Below, in pieces: positions 17,310 through 35,658 of a stretch of 64,000 nt of DNA. This DNA is from Octopus sinensis (Eukaryota), in the NCBI RefSeq assembly GCF_006345805.1, contig NC_043021.1, positions 23,560,001 to 23,624,000 on the forward strand, written 5' to 3'. The first letter of the stretch is position 1; every line of letters starts with the position of its first letter. Made by a program: the position numbers and the translations under genes. The notes under the pieces are model-generated. The model searched no databases. It saw only the letters and a program-made list of their open reading frames with translations, and was not told the origin of the DNA.

Positions 17310-17415
17310 ATGTGGAAGCTTTTCTCAATTATTTTACTGCAATGGGCATTAACCTCTCAAGGATTTTATTTTCGGACTGAACTCGATTGGGAAGCAGAGC
17401 AAAAACCCCAAAAAG
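17310..17415 (+). CDS. Stanniocalcin-like secreted protein, copy B, exon 1 (signal peptide)
   Basis: ATG at 17310 gives [35 protein letters not shown] plus 1 nt, then donor AAG|GTTAGT. Hydrophobic signal peptide. The same 106-nt exon is intact in three copies. Confidence 0.85.
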
Positions 17416-17438
17416 GTTAGTGTATTGCAGTATGACCG

Positions 17439-17710
17439 TATATATATATATATATATATATATATAATATACATACATATATATATACATATATATATAT
17501 ATATATATATATTTATATATATATATATATATATACATATATATATACATATATATATATATATATATATATATATATATATATGCATATATATATATAT
17601 ATATATATATATATATACATACATACATATATATATATATATATATATATACACACACACATATATATATATATATATATATTATATATATATATATATA
17701 TATATATATG
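17439..17710. repeat. (TA)n just after exon 1 (also 4172-4380). Many other (TA)n, (CA)n, (GA)n and (AAT)n tracts occur through the window
   Basis: Direct reading. These are the source of the poly-IY, poly-I, poly-L and HT ORFs in the track. Confidence 0.95.
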
Positions 17711-17965
17711 CATATATATAAATTTATATAAATAAGGATATGATCGTTATTTAAATATCGATCTATCAAGTGGCCAGGATAGGAATAAAATCCTTCAAAG
17801 GTAATAATTATTATTAAAATTATGATTTAGGATATTCAAGAGATACCAACACGCTGGAAATAGCAGCCAAAAGTTGACTCTACATTAAATGTTCTTACAA
17901 CACTAGGAGAGAAGACAAAAAGACAAAAATATACTAGCAAAAAATTTATTTTGCCTTTTTGTCGT

Positions 17966-18012
17966 CTCACTTGATGAGAGGCTGGAGGGTACATCAGCCG
18001 AAACGTTGTGTT
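17966..18012 (+). ncRNA. Degenerate hammerhead, same family as 32006-32051
   Basis: UUGAUGAGA-GGCUG-GAGGGUACAU-CAGCC-GAAACGUU-GUGUU, with C3U and one extra base. Confidence 0.55.
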
Positions 18013-18049
18013 AACAGCAAACAAGATGGGGACAAATATCTGTCAAATG

Positions 18050-31861: not shown

Positions 31862-32775
31862 TTACGCGTTCCCTGTTATACAACCATCGTTAGATATGTT
31901 TTCATATACCCCAAGGTACCTGTGACATTCTTCATCAGATATGGCAGACACATTATTTACATTATTTACATTTGACAGATATTTGTCATCATCTTGTTTG
32001 TTGTTAACACAACGTTTCGGCTGATATACCCTCCAGCCTTCATCAGGTGTCTGGGTAAACTTTCGAACATGGGTTCTCATTCTTAAGGTATTTTTCGATG
32101 TTATCATTCTTCTTCTTATTATTATTATTATTAGTATTATTATCATTATTAATATTATTATTATTATTATTATTATTATTATTATTATTATTATTATTAT
32201 TATTATTATTATTGTTATTATTATTATTAATATTATTATTATCATTATTATTATTATTATTATTATTATTATTATTATTATTATTATTATTATTATTATT
32301 ATTATTATTATTATTATAATTGTTGTTGTTATTATTATTATTATTATTATTACTATTATTCTATGTTTGACTTTTGCTTTATATTTGTACAAGTTGGCTC
32401 CAAGTCTCACCCAGAGACCTCAAGAGACAACAGGTTGGAAGTTCATGTTGTTGTTATGCCTAGTATGCCATATATTTGATTTTTTTGTGGGGGTGTTGTA
32501 CTAGTGAATGTCCAAAAAAAAAACGAAAATTATGTTTGTTTTAAACCTTGAGATTACATAGAAAGTATTTTGCGTAGGATATGAGCAGTTCCCATGAGCA
32601 CTATCTTTTGAATTTCTGCCAATTTTGGATTTCCTGGTATCTGAGTTAGGTAGCAATCATTCCCAGGGCACTTATGACAACAGGTATTGTTTTAGTCTTC
32701 AGGTTCCACATTTTGCTGATTTCTATTTCAAGATCGTTATATTTGCTCAGTTTTTGGTAGGTCTTGACAGATACG
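31862..32775 (-). mobile_element. Fragments of a second Dong/R4-like element around (TAA)n tracts
   Basis: EECHRYLGVYE (31862-31950) and DLEIEISKMWNLKTKTIPVVISALG (about 32650-32740). Confidence 0.7.
32006..32051 (-). ncRNA. Type I hammerhead ribozyme in a PLE-tail unit of about 150 nt
   Basis: GACAC-CUGAUGA-A-GGCUG-GAGGGUAUAU-CAGCC-GAAA-CGUU-GUGUU. Stems I and II pair. Stem III is the ACGU palindrome (dimer-type). Confidence 0.8.
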
Positions 32776-32999
32776 TTTATATCCTATTATTATTATTATT
32801 ATTATTATTACTATTATTATTATTATTATTATTATTATTATTATTATTATTATTATTATTATTATTATTATTATTATTATTATTATTATTAATATTATTA
32901 TTATTATTATCATTATTATTATTATTATTATTATTATTATTATATTTTTAAAAGGATTGACGTAACTCTTCCCAAAGGTAAACAGTCAAGACGAAGAAC

Positions 33000-34900
33000 G
33001 CGATTCGATTGTAAGGTATTTTATTAGTCGAACGATATTTCAACAGTATATCTGCCTTTGTCAAGTTCAAAATAAGAAGTGATAAAAATTCAAAATTACA
33101 GAAATTTAAGCGTAAAGTATGAACGCGAGCAACCAGCTTACACGCGTTGATGGAATGACATCATCAGATTTTAAGTTACAATTTTATAACAGGCGAAAAG
33201 AAAAAGACAGAAAAAAAAACAGAAAAAAGAAGACGAAAGAAAAAAGGAAAGAAAAAGAGAGAAAGAAGAATATTTAATCAAACAGTTTTGTATAAATTTG
33301 ATGATATTCTCCTGTCATCTTATTCAACCCTCCAGGGCGTGATATTAATAACCCACAAACATATTTCTCCTCATACATTCTGAGAAGTGAAAGTGAAACA
33401 GATTGAGACTATTTTCTGAGAATATGCACTTTAAAGTCTTCTTCAAAATTGTAGCCGCTTGAAACGAAATGTTCAGCAAGTTCTGTCCAACTACTGTTAT
33501 TGCGCCTAGCGTCGAATCTGTGCCCATTAAACATTTCGTTAAATTGTTCTGTTCTACAACCAACATAAATTGTGTTTCGTGCATTCTGCAGCGTACACCA
33601 AATGGGAATCTTTACATATTCCACCCTCTGTATAAATCATATCATTTCTGTTATGATTTCTGATGAAATTCACTTCAATCATGTTGTTGCACAATGAACA
33701 GGGCTTACCTCTCTTGCTAATCTTAGCTATTTCATTTGCTATTTCCTTTAATCGTGATTCACTGTAACCGCGTTTGACATAATGACATACAAAAGCATTT
33801 GCATGTTTCCAGTAGTCCCCTATGCCAGTACGAATCCACTTTTTCCTCACAAATTGGGATTTCGGATTTGACCGAATAAGATGATGTGGATGATCGGAGC
33901 GGCGATGGAGATAAATGTGGGATGACGTGGCTTTGCAAAATAACTGTCATTATTCTGCCTCCAGAAAACTTTGTGTTTAAAAAATTCAACGCTAGTCTTT
34001 GAAAAACTAGAAAAAGTTGTTGATTTCAGATACAAAATCAAAGGTATCCCGTATATATATGAACTTGATCATTTTTTGACGGGGAGTAGAAAGCCATCCA
34101 GCCAATCCGAAATTTGGCCGTGCAGCATTCATATCCGCTGCAAATTGGGCGCATTGGATGAAATCTTTCGAACTTTTTTGTGTATTTTAGGGAGACTAAC
34201 TGAAATAGCCCTTGAGCTAGTTTATTCTTGTCGAAATTCTTAGTGCTTGGGCAAAAATTCAGTCCAAGCTCTAACACTGAGACATCATCGGGCGAAAGTT
34301 TTAGTTTAGATAAGTTTATGTCCGACTTATTCTCTAGTGTGATGGTTTTTTCTCGGGCAAGTGGTTTTCAGATTCTTTTTCTCATTAGATTCCTGACTAT
34401 ATTTTGGGCTTTGCTCGAAATCTTCACTTAAAACACGGAACCTATTAGGTGATAAATTATTTTGTGAATGTTCACGTGAGAAGTTATAATTTTTAGTCGC
34501 CTTTCTAGGGGTAACCCATTTCTGGGTGGGTGATAGACAGTGTCTTCTGTGGTTTTTATAGATATTTGAAAAACCTTTACTTTCGTGAAAGGAACAAATT
34601 TATTGTTTTCGAGGCAAAATCTTAAATGTGCTCGCATTTTTGACTGATCAAATAGAAACTTCCCTGGAGCGTTTCCAATGACCAGTTCAAATGCATACGC
34701 CAGGGCAAAAGGGCCACAATCATATGCGCCAACTTGGGGATTAATTATATGAACTTGTTGAATTGTAGGAGTAATTTTTGTTTGTGGTGAATTAACGTTG
34801 ATTTTGTGCCATTAGTTCCTGCGAAACTGGTAAATTCAAACTGTCATAAATATAAACATCTAAAAAATTGGTTGATAAAACAAAATGATTGTTCCTGGTG
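33000..34900 (-). mobile_element. Internally deleted Penelope-like element (Neptune-like)
   Basis: LELGLNFCPS, RPICSGY, thumb KHANAF..KRGY, CxxC linker KPCSLC, EN LVYAAEC...IYVG...NGH. RT core with YxDD is missing. Degenerate HHR-like hairpin at about 33030-33065. Confidence 0.75.
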
Positions 34901-35528
34901 TGATGAATAAACAGTGTGCGGTGTTGATTGTAGGTTAGAAATTCCGTGTGATTATTATTCAGGTGCTCCACACAGAAATTGTAGGAGCTACTTAGAGATA
35001 TTGCTCGCTCTTCTGTTGGTGGCTAAAACCATGTCAATGTAGGGAATCCCTTTCGTATTCAGCGAGTATCTGAGGGTCGCAAGTGTCTCGCTTCTTAATC
35101 TGTACGCTCTGCCGGAGTTGGGCAACAACAAAAGGGCACGAGGCCACGAGTAATCCCCTGACAAGTGTCTCATCAAATCAGTCCTGAAATGTGGCTTCTT
35201 TCTTCTGATAAAAAACGAGTCCACCAGTCAAATCCACTTGATTCTCCTAAAGTGAGATTTGTTGCAATATAGAAAGCAGGTTCCCTACAGTTGCTTTCGC
35301 CTTTTCTTGCTTCTGGAATTGGTATTTTCCCACCTCTTGCAGAGTTGAATTTGCCTCCAGATTCAAACTGAGTTAGCATTAGACAATAAAAGCAAACCCT
35401 GTTACTGTGTGTGTGTGTTTGTGTCTGTCTATCAGTTTGTCTGATGTCTGCCTATTTGAGTGTGTTTGTCTGAGTGTTATTGACTGAGTGTGTTTGATTA
35501 AGACACCAATATATTTTTTATATTGCAG

Positions 35529-35658
35529 AATGTGGCAAAATTTTGCCAAGATGTCTTCAGAATGCAGTACGACAACTGCTGACCAATTAATACCATGGGT
35601 CAAAGCCCAATTCAACGATGGCGATGATTTGGCAAATATGTGGAAGAAATTACATTAA
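35529..35658 (+). CDS. Stanniocalcin-like protein, copy B, terminal exon 4
   Basis: Acceptor TATATTGCAG|, phase 2 compatible with exon 3. Reads (I)MWQNFAKMSSECSTTTADQLIPWVKAQFNDGDDLANMWKKLH*. Supplies the tenth Cys. Total CDS 621 nt = 206 aa. AATAAA at about 35834. Confidence 0.75.

Follow-up and report, generated by a model that had tools for sequence, protein, structure and literature searches.

What kind of gene is assembled from four short exons that lie far apart in octopus DNA, and what might its product be for? The question is posed by a 64,000-nucleotide stretch of the 2.72-Gb Octopus sinensis genome (C25:23560001-23624000; hereafter the window, meaning the whole stretch of DNA analysed), which is AT-rich and laden with repeats and holds, at positions 17310-35658 of its forward strand, a gene that we call copy A. 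As read from the sequence, copy A is an intact and presumably active O. sinensis gene for a secreted protein with the predicted fold of the stanniocalcins (STCs). We find that it belongs to a tandem array in which the signal exon and the introns are more conserved than the exons for the mature protein, and we propose that its product may well be a secretion of the salivary or venom gland.

Gene model and family membership of copy A

The four exons (Table 1) are joined by GT-AG introns in phases 1, 0 and 2, with acceptors of the polypyrimidine-AG type, into a coding sequence of 621 nucleotides (nt) that translates into 206 residues. Exon 1 supplies the ATG, a signal peptide and a short N-terminal stretch; exon 2 the first five cysteines (ECLQYSKDLDCRFYECLEERFPCG...HC); exon 3 cysteines 6-9 (GKIWINSITKC ... 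DC ... CYTDNDFCNVGW); and exon 4, the most distinctive of the copy A exons, the C-terminal helices with cysteine 10 (SSECS). The cysteines fall at residues 41, 50, 55, 62, 75, 99, 115, 129, 136 and 176. The signal peptide, assigned by inspection only, runs from MWK through a hydrophobic stretch to TSQG, has small residues at positions -3 and -1, and keeps its sequence across all paralogues; the mature part is basic (pI 8.7) and of about 22 kDa. Copies A, B and C, the latter two being paralogues described below, each have exactly ten cysteines and no N-x-S/T motif. A candidate TATA box (TATATAT, 17165-17171, + strand), found by inspection of the sequence, lies 145 nt 5' of the copy A ATG, in a stretch of 5' flank that copies A, B and C all conserve. 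An Rfam search of the window gave no match.

Table 1 Coordinates of STC-array exons and of other features (window positions unless given on C25; a slash marks an exon border)
Feature	Position	Strand	Details
Copy A exon 1	17310-17415	+	106 nt; donor G/GTTAGT; ends in phase 1
Copy A exon 2	22090-22247	+	158 nt; acceptor ...tttcAG, donor GTAGGT; ends in phase 0
Copy A exon 3	30324-30550	+	227 nt; acceptor ...cacAG, donor AT/GTAAGT; ends in phase 2
Copy A exon 4	35529-35658	+	130 nt; acceptor ...tgcAG; stop codon TAA at 35656-35658
Copy B exon 1	50517-50622	+	paralogous to copy A exon 1
Copy B exon 2	58251-58408	+	paralogous exon
Copy B exon 3	62942-63168	+	paralogous exon
Copy B exon 4	C25:23629418-23629547		intact; 6.2 kb beyond the window end
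Copy C exon 1	4406-4511	-	first exon of a third gene; transcription runs away from copy A
Copy C exons 2-4	C25:23534394, 23523128, 23520035		30-44 kb left of the window
LINE-type retrotransposon	25128-28818	+	intron 2 of copy A; open 813-residue frame; RVT_1 (E = 1.7e-32) and zf-RVT
PIF1-helicase fragments (Helitron-like)	18581-19835	+	intron 1 of copy A; two open frames; PF05970 (E = 5.9e-42)
Long frame	10446-12701	+	163 + 587 residues with one stop between; no Pfam match
Reverse-transcriptase fragment	43496-44581	+	spacer between copies A and B; RVT_1 (E = 1.8e-7)

Retention of intron 3 in copy A would bring an immediate stop at the exon 3 donor. A read-through form of 164 residues, which would be left with nine cysteines, is ruled out as the main product because exon 4, which supplies cysteine 10, is conserved among the paralogues as well as in conventional STC-like genes; both in the paralogues and in the conventional gene of Argonauta, the tenth cysteine is encoded by the exon homologous to it.

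The sequence-only reading of this DNA had put forward the same four-exon gene, and its coordinates, splice sites, phases and 206-residue product are exactly as described there, as are the signal peptide and the ten cysteines of the joined protein. It had also called the gene hidden. This holds for the product of copy A, which an exact look-up among about 15 billion proteins did not find in either its 206- or its 164-residue form, and fails for the neighbouring O. sinensis copies, which RefSeq already lists under the name 'uncharacterized protein' and which match the Pfam STC profile. Nor did the look-up return O. sinensis copy C or copy B in their full-length forms.

The protein is, on the evidence of sequence comparison and of a predicted fold, a member of the STC family. 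We base this assignment on five lines of agreement: the Pfam profile, the PDB sequence match, the fold match, the positions and phases of the introns, and the alignment of the cysteines. The Pfam Stanniocalcin profile (PF03298) matches residues 38-165 of copy A at 41.5 bits, above its cut-off of 23 (E = 1.3e-10). A sequence search of the PDB with copy A returns STC2 chains as the sole match (E = 9e-4), and a profile of the octopod clade likewise finds STC2 only (E = 6.3e-9). Nine of the copy A cysteines align one to one with Cys 56, 65, 70, 76, 85, 109, 125, 139 and 146 of STC2, and in an alignment of 67 sequences all ten occupy invariant or nearly invariant columns, with the exception of the less conserved cysteine 1.

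For the fold, the annotated paralogue C protein (P0001; 72% identical to copy A) was modelled from 67 homologues gathered by an exhaustive HMMER search. The AlphaFold model (pLDDT 87.6, pTM 0.78) contains 11 helices, and its four best matches among PDB folds are STC2 chains (probability 0.99-1.0, TM 0.45-0.60), the next-best match beyond STC2 having a probability of at most 0.16. STC2 itself has been described as an 11-helix bundle without other structural homologue (PMC9579167). The stanniocalcin-like character that the sequence-only reading had proposed is upheld by the profile match and, through paralogue C, by the structure comparison.

Gene structure agrees with this assignment. The first intron interrupts the coding sequence five codons before cysteine 1, and the second and third precede the motifs G-[KR]-x-W and [LM]-W-x-N, respectively. 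In the conventional Argonauta STC-like gene, three introns lie at identical codons and in identical phases (1, 0, 2), and a chiton STC-like gene, recovered without its third exon, agrees in phases and in the positions of its boundaries. The human genes STC1 and STC2 are likewise divided into four exons and share their exon boundaries (PMC8806499).

Set beside vertebrate STC1 and STC2 (8A7D, 8A7E, 7Y5Q, 8HGH), copy A likewise has a signal peptide, the same order and spacing of ten cysteines, a predicted all-helical bundle and four exons, but is only about 16-18% identical to them. It lacks the N-glycosylation motif of the vertebrate proteins and the 11th cysteine that makes their disulfide-linked dimer; relative to STC2 it also lacks Cys120, the covalent link to PAPP-A, and Lys104, and has a shorter loop between cysteines 4 and 5. 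Whereas vertebrates have one or two STC genes, the octopod family occurs in many tandem copies. In characterised STCs the ten cysteines form five disulfides. The glycosylation motif and the 11th cysteine vary among other invertebrate STCs (PMC5654410), and their absence from copy A is therefore no bar to membership of the wider family; other invertebrate STCs also lack Cys120 (PMC11925022).

The octopod array and its exon-intron contrast

Where the sequence-only reading had counted a cluster of three copies, exon-by-exon searches of the genome place at least 15 loci on both strands of C25 between 23.406 and 24.026 Mb, an array of about 620 kb. The count comes from 14 matches to exon 3 and further matches to exon 2, and several distant members are known from a single exon. 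Additional copies lie on unplaced scaffolds; one exon-1 copy among them (C4234:6485-6592, L024) contains an in-frame stop (EAEV-stop-PQ) and is probably a dead fragment. A conventional STC-like gene lies apart from the array at C9:61.92 Mb, and was missed by a genome-wide search with the Pfam model, which recovered array exons only. The acceptor AG and the donor GTAAGT are kept in 14 of the 14 exon-3 copies inspected. Chance open frames are ruled out as an account of copy A by this conservation of splice sites in 14 copies and by the E value of 1.3e-10 from Pfam.

Several members are found on one chromosome or scaffold in each of O. vulgaris, O. bimaculoides (orthologues P0004, P0008 and P0161) and Argonauta, all named 'uncharacterized'. 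In a maximum-likelihood tree the octopod array forms a clade of its own (support 96/93), within which copies A and B are sisters, and the conventional STC-like proteins of cephalopods, a chiton, a gastropod and an annelid fall outside it. This topology supports a lineage-specific, octopod expansion of the family; the tandem paralogues and the lineage-specific expansion that had been suggested for this locus stand, with the conventional gene on another chromosome.

Conventional invertebrate STC-like proteins, reportedly the subject of Roch and Sherwood in 2011, are represented here by Argonauta GAB1608148.1, chiton XP_064608593.1 and the product of the C9 gene. They resemble the array members in being secreted proteins of about 200 residues with a ten-cysteine core, the same three intron positions and phases, and no Cys120. 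The array differs from them in lacking a hydrophobic GYxxxxGxxYC segment between cysteines 4 and 5, in forming its own clade and in having multiplied into at least 15 loci with hypervariable mature exons. Among more distant sequences, Branchiostoma models (P0009, P0010 and P0012) contain STC-like domains, often two per protein, joined to parts that resemble phospholipase A2 or belong to lysozyme g; either tandem genes have been fused in the models or the proteins are genuinely multidomain.

Copies B and C account for the remaining STC exons in the window. The paralogous exons noted earlier at 50517-63168 are indeed intact and form the first three exons of copy B, the fourth lying past the window end. 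This gene is LOC118767949 in RefSeq (P0002), where it is modelled as 164 residues; the model reads through the exon-3 donor (AT/GTAAGT, read as ATG TAA) and so lacks cysteine 10. The four-exon version of copy B encodes 206 residues with ten cysteines, 34 of the residues being unlike those of copy A. The minus-strand exon 1 that had been reported at 4406-4511 is likewise real and begins copy C. The O. vulgaris orthologue of copy C (P0001, locus L043) is annotated as a 48.5-kb gene for 206 residues, and the intergenic DNA upstream of it is 98.4% identical to window positions 5472-14503.

The contrast between exons and introns is the most distinctive property of the array. Copies A and B are 96.5% identical over 6164 aligned non-exonic bases, and their exons 1 to 4 differ at 3 of 106, 4 of 158, 23 of 227 and 17 of 130 positions, which amounts to 47 nt and 34 residues. 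Across paralogue pairs, exons 2 and 3 show 2-7 times the divergence of the flanking introns (P down to 1e-18). In the A-C pair, 26 of the 158 positions of exon 2 differ against 72 of 2913 in its flanks (P = 7e-13), with the mismatches limited to the 3' two thirds of the exon, and 43 of the 227 positions of exon 3 differ against 36-43 of about 1230 in its flanks (P ~1e-15). The excess is weaker in exon 4, where it is significant mainly in comparisons that involve copy A (between A and B, 17 of 130 against 102 of 2086 in the flanks, 2.7-fold; P = 4e-4), and is reversed in exon 1, with 1-6% divergence among paralogues against 8-18% in the flanks. In 50-nt bins the jump in divergence falls sharply at the exon borders.

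The introns tell of exchange between units. Copies A, B, D, D2, E and E2, whose exon 3 sequences differ by 10-22%, share 270 nt of intron 3 at 98-100% identity. The upstream intron groups copy A with B and C, and the downstream intron groups it with B, D and E; these groupings conflict, and the units are therefore mosaic.

The exons are diverse under evident constraint. Despite 47 nt differences between copies A and B, no stop has arisen and every cysteine is kept, an outcome that a simulation of 47 random substitutions reaches with P = 0.007; the frames, cysteines and splice sites are clearly constrained. These data bear on whether copy A might be a silent or decaying duplicate, its frame still open through recent duplication or conversion from live copies. 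Such a copy would agree with the absence of its exact product from a protein collection in which its neighbours have RefSeq models, with a ratio of nonsynonymous to synonymous divergence (dN/dS) of about 1 against copy B, and with the LINE and Helitron pieces in its introns. We nonetheless judge decay quite improbable: four exons, six splice sites, start, stop and ten cysteines have stayed intact, copy A still has the conserved 5' stretch that contains the TATA-like motif, and the Helitron piece is common to the annotated copy C, so that intronic transposable elements are no sign of decay. The database absence is itself weak evidence, because the full-length copies B and C are equally absent.

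Pairwise NG86 estimates, made on short sequences, give dN/dS of about 1.0-1.2 for the core and 0.6-1.9 for exon 3 within the young clade. Two further observations complicate an explanation by selection on residues. Synonymous divergence (dS) is itself raised: copy C stands at a dS of 0.16-0.17 from both A and B, where introns diverge by about 0.03, and simple positive selection on amino acids therefore does not explain the exon excess. Moreover, the copy C exons differ between O. sinensis and O. vulgaris at only 2 of 624 positions against 167 of 11900 in the flanks, which indicates purifying selection between these species. Steady hypermutation of exons is ruled out by this near-identity.

Taken together, these data make the exon sequences older than the introns around them. 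Our best reading is that recombination or gene conversion has homogenised the introns and the signal exon, and that selection for diversity has let differences between exons persist or be shuffled anew as short tracts. The raised dS and the conserved orthologous exons both favour such intron homogenisation with exon-scale conversion over a steady acceleration of point mutation.

Other parts of the array offer observations of the same kind. Copies D and D2 (C25:23456696-23456866, L018, and 23410033-23410188, L016) are near-identical 46.6-kb duplicates, with 8 of 2987 differences in the flanks and 0 of 227 in exon 3, yet 10 of 158 in exon 2 (P = 2e-9). Unless it is an assembly error, this points to conversion or replacement on the scale of one exon. 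A D-like exon 3 in O. vulgaris (L044, 27252-27479) matches O. sinensis copy D (L005) in its 5' part and copy B in its 3' part (KEANKIVLDIQ..PITTAKT); it differs from copy D at 11 of 75 residues, where neutral DNA of the two species differs by about 1.5%, and looks like a recent mosaic at the exon level.

Two irregularities of the assembly also deserve mention. Exons 3 and 4 of copy C are present twice, 14.4 kb apart and identical (C25:23505656-23508990 and 23520035-23523358). Neither an exon 1 nor an exon 2 turned up for the second of these sets (L003, L029), which represents either an incomplete duplication or an error of assembly. Gene order differs between O. vulgaris (OX597838.1, 39.35-40.08 Mb) and O. 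sinensis (C25, 23.41-24.03 Mb), in that a LOC118767942-like gene lies beyond the D-like gene in the former and on the opposite side of copy C in the latter, through either an inversion or a mis-assembly.

Could the copies as a whole be artefacts, namely uncollapsed haplotypes or mis-joined repeats? Exon 3 is identical in the C/C2 and D/D2 pairs, whose flanks are 0.2-0.3% apart, and the gene order around LOC118767942 is unlike that of the O. vulgaris assembly. Even so, we regard the idea as extremely improbable. Copies A and B differ at 3.5% of non-coding positions, at 34 residues and in their transposon insertions; copy C with its 30-kb intron is reproduced in the independent O. vulgaris assembly; and O. 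bimaculoides and Argonauta have several members on one chromosome or scaffold. For copies A and B in particular, a haplotig artefact is ruled out by the non-coding divergence and the different insertions.

A proposed salivary role

We think it fairly probable that copy A, as part of the octopod STC array, yields a prey-directed secretion of the salivary or venom gland. Each paralogue would then present a different surface of the STC scaffold to an extracellular prey target. Within the array, exon 1, the cysteine framework, the splice sites and the introns vary little, and differences between copies are maintained in the surface-coding parts of exons 2-4. As to mechanism, we tentatively suggest that the products could block pappalysin-type metalloproteinases of the prey or mimic the prey's own STC; STC1 and STC2 inhibit PAPP-A (PMC9579167). 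A more specific version, which we hold to be possible if rather doubtful, is a hormone-derived venom family in which change confined to exons, by way of conversion mosaics and diversifying selection, would allow different paralogues to disable different prey targets, such as the pappalysins or STC receptors of fish and molluscs.

The suggestion of a gland draws on Koch et al. (2026), who report that STC-like 'doppelganger toxins' (SF5) are highly expressed as secreted proteins in the posterior salivary glands of octopuses (bioRxiv 10.64898/2026.02.02.703354); at the level of the family, this agrees with the gland or venom role that the sequence-only reading had guessed at. Entry to SF5 was by salivary-gland expression above 1000 transcripts per million (tpm) or by BLASTP homology (1e-3) to such a transcript (bioRxiv 10.64898/2026.02.02.703354). 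Like the array members, SF5 proteins are secreted octopus homologues of STC, recognised by BLASTP and by AlphaFold overlay on human STC2; unlike the present analysis, the text of the preprint gives no genomic array, array size or exon-intron contrast. By analogy, the array would be linked to SF5 at the level of the family only. Another preprint on cephalopod venom makes no reference to the STC family, and the searchable literature yielded no mention of the RefSeq accessions of the array.

The form of the array fits a toxin family: it is tandem, its cysteines are fixed, and its signal exon and introns are more conserved than its mature exons. Conotoxin superfamilies and snake venom-gland phospholipase A2 genes combine a conserved signal with a hypervariable mature region, and intron homogenisation is known from HLA class I. 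As a group, these systems resemble the array in a tandem layout, in a signal exon and introns that are conserved over the mature exons, in a fixed cysteine framework, in dN/dS near or above 1 and in mosaic paralogues. The array departs from them in its raised synonymous sites and in orthologous exons that are conserved between two close species.

The same features can be weighed for a role within the animal itself. The array might encode the octopus's own signalling or regulatory proteins, be they STC-like factors with paracrine action or inhibitors of endogenous metalloproteinases, acting in non-venom tissues and diversified by subfunctionalisation. In all systems studied to date, STCs act as hormones or as paracrine factors. 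The clade also stems from the octopus's own STC-like family, with which it has its gene structure in common, and O. sinensis and O. vulgaris have kept copy C conserved. We consider such an endogenous role unlikely, in that a conventional STC-like gene has been retained on C9, that a conserved signal exon with hypervariable mature exons, dN/dS at or above about 1 and a large array is typical of toxin or defence families, and that the preprint places STC-like proteins among highly expressed salivary-gland secretions.

Several points nevertheless weigh against a prey-directed secretion built on the STC fold, in addition to the raised dS and the conserved copy C exons given above. The fold agreement is moderate (TM ~0.5-0.6, Foldseek E 0.03-0.14) and was obtained on paralogue C, not on copy A. 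The PAPP-A-binding features of STC2, Cys120, Lys104 and the dimerising Cys211, have no counterpart in copy A, and Kjeldsen and Oxvig (2025) deem an interaction between invertebrate STCs and pappalysins unlikely (PMC11925022). The absence of copy A from the protein collection could mean that it has no transcript support, and any identity of copies A, B and C with SF5 members, like their expression in the gland, is presumptive.

Earlier work has recorded the STC family and its likely link to the venom gland, and annotations exist for neighbouring genes. The present analysis adds a copy A product that the protein collection does not list, a corrected copy B model, the extent and layout of the array, and the exon-intron contrast. 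The array would supply a genomic basis for a toxin superfamily so far known from transcripts alone. To our knowledge, the receptor of STC, an old hormone, is still unknown, and pappalysin inhibition is its sole firm molecular activity. At least 15 versions of the scaffold, with a fixed framework, varied surfaces and probably a salivary source, would form a natural panel of variants for the study of binding by the STC fold. The combination of homogenised introns with diversified exons also makes a clear case for how tandem families keep their copies different. Finally, the RefSeq models at this locus are incomplete, with the copy A product missing from the protein collection and copy B deprived of its last exon and of cysteine 10, and any expression or proteome survey based on these models will under-count the family.

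Mobile elements and repeats in the window

The LINE (long interspersed element) in intron 2 of copy A (Table 1) forms no part of the gene and is absent at the same site of copy B; the alignment of the two copies has a gap that sets 24941-28916 in A against 60784-61416 in B. Its copies in O. vulgaris loci L043 and L044 are 93-98% identical, and the LINE family therefore looks young. The Helitron-like piece of intron 1 is found in intron 1 of copy C too, where O. vulgaris L043 35900-38010 is 97.4% identical to window positions 18097-20202.

Upstream of copy A, the long frame at 10446-12701 shows, by eye, a reverse-transcriptase YRDD motif and a GIY-YIG-like 'YIGST' near its end, and may be a Penelope-like retroelement. 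Microsatellites include (TA)149 just past copy A exon 1 (17439-17734) and (TTA)87 in intron 3 (32101-32360), and many runs of TA, CA and AAT give rise to spurious long open frames on both strands.

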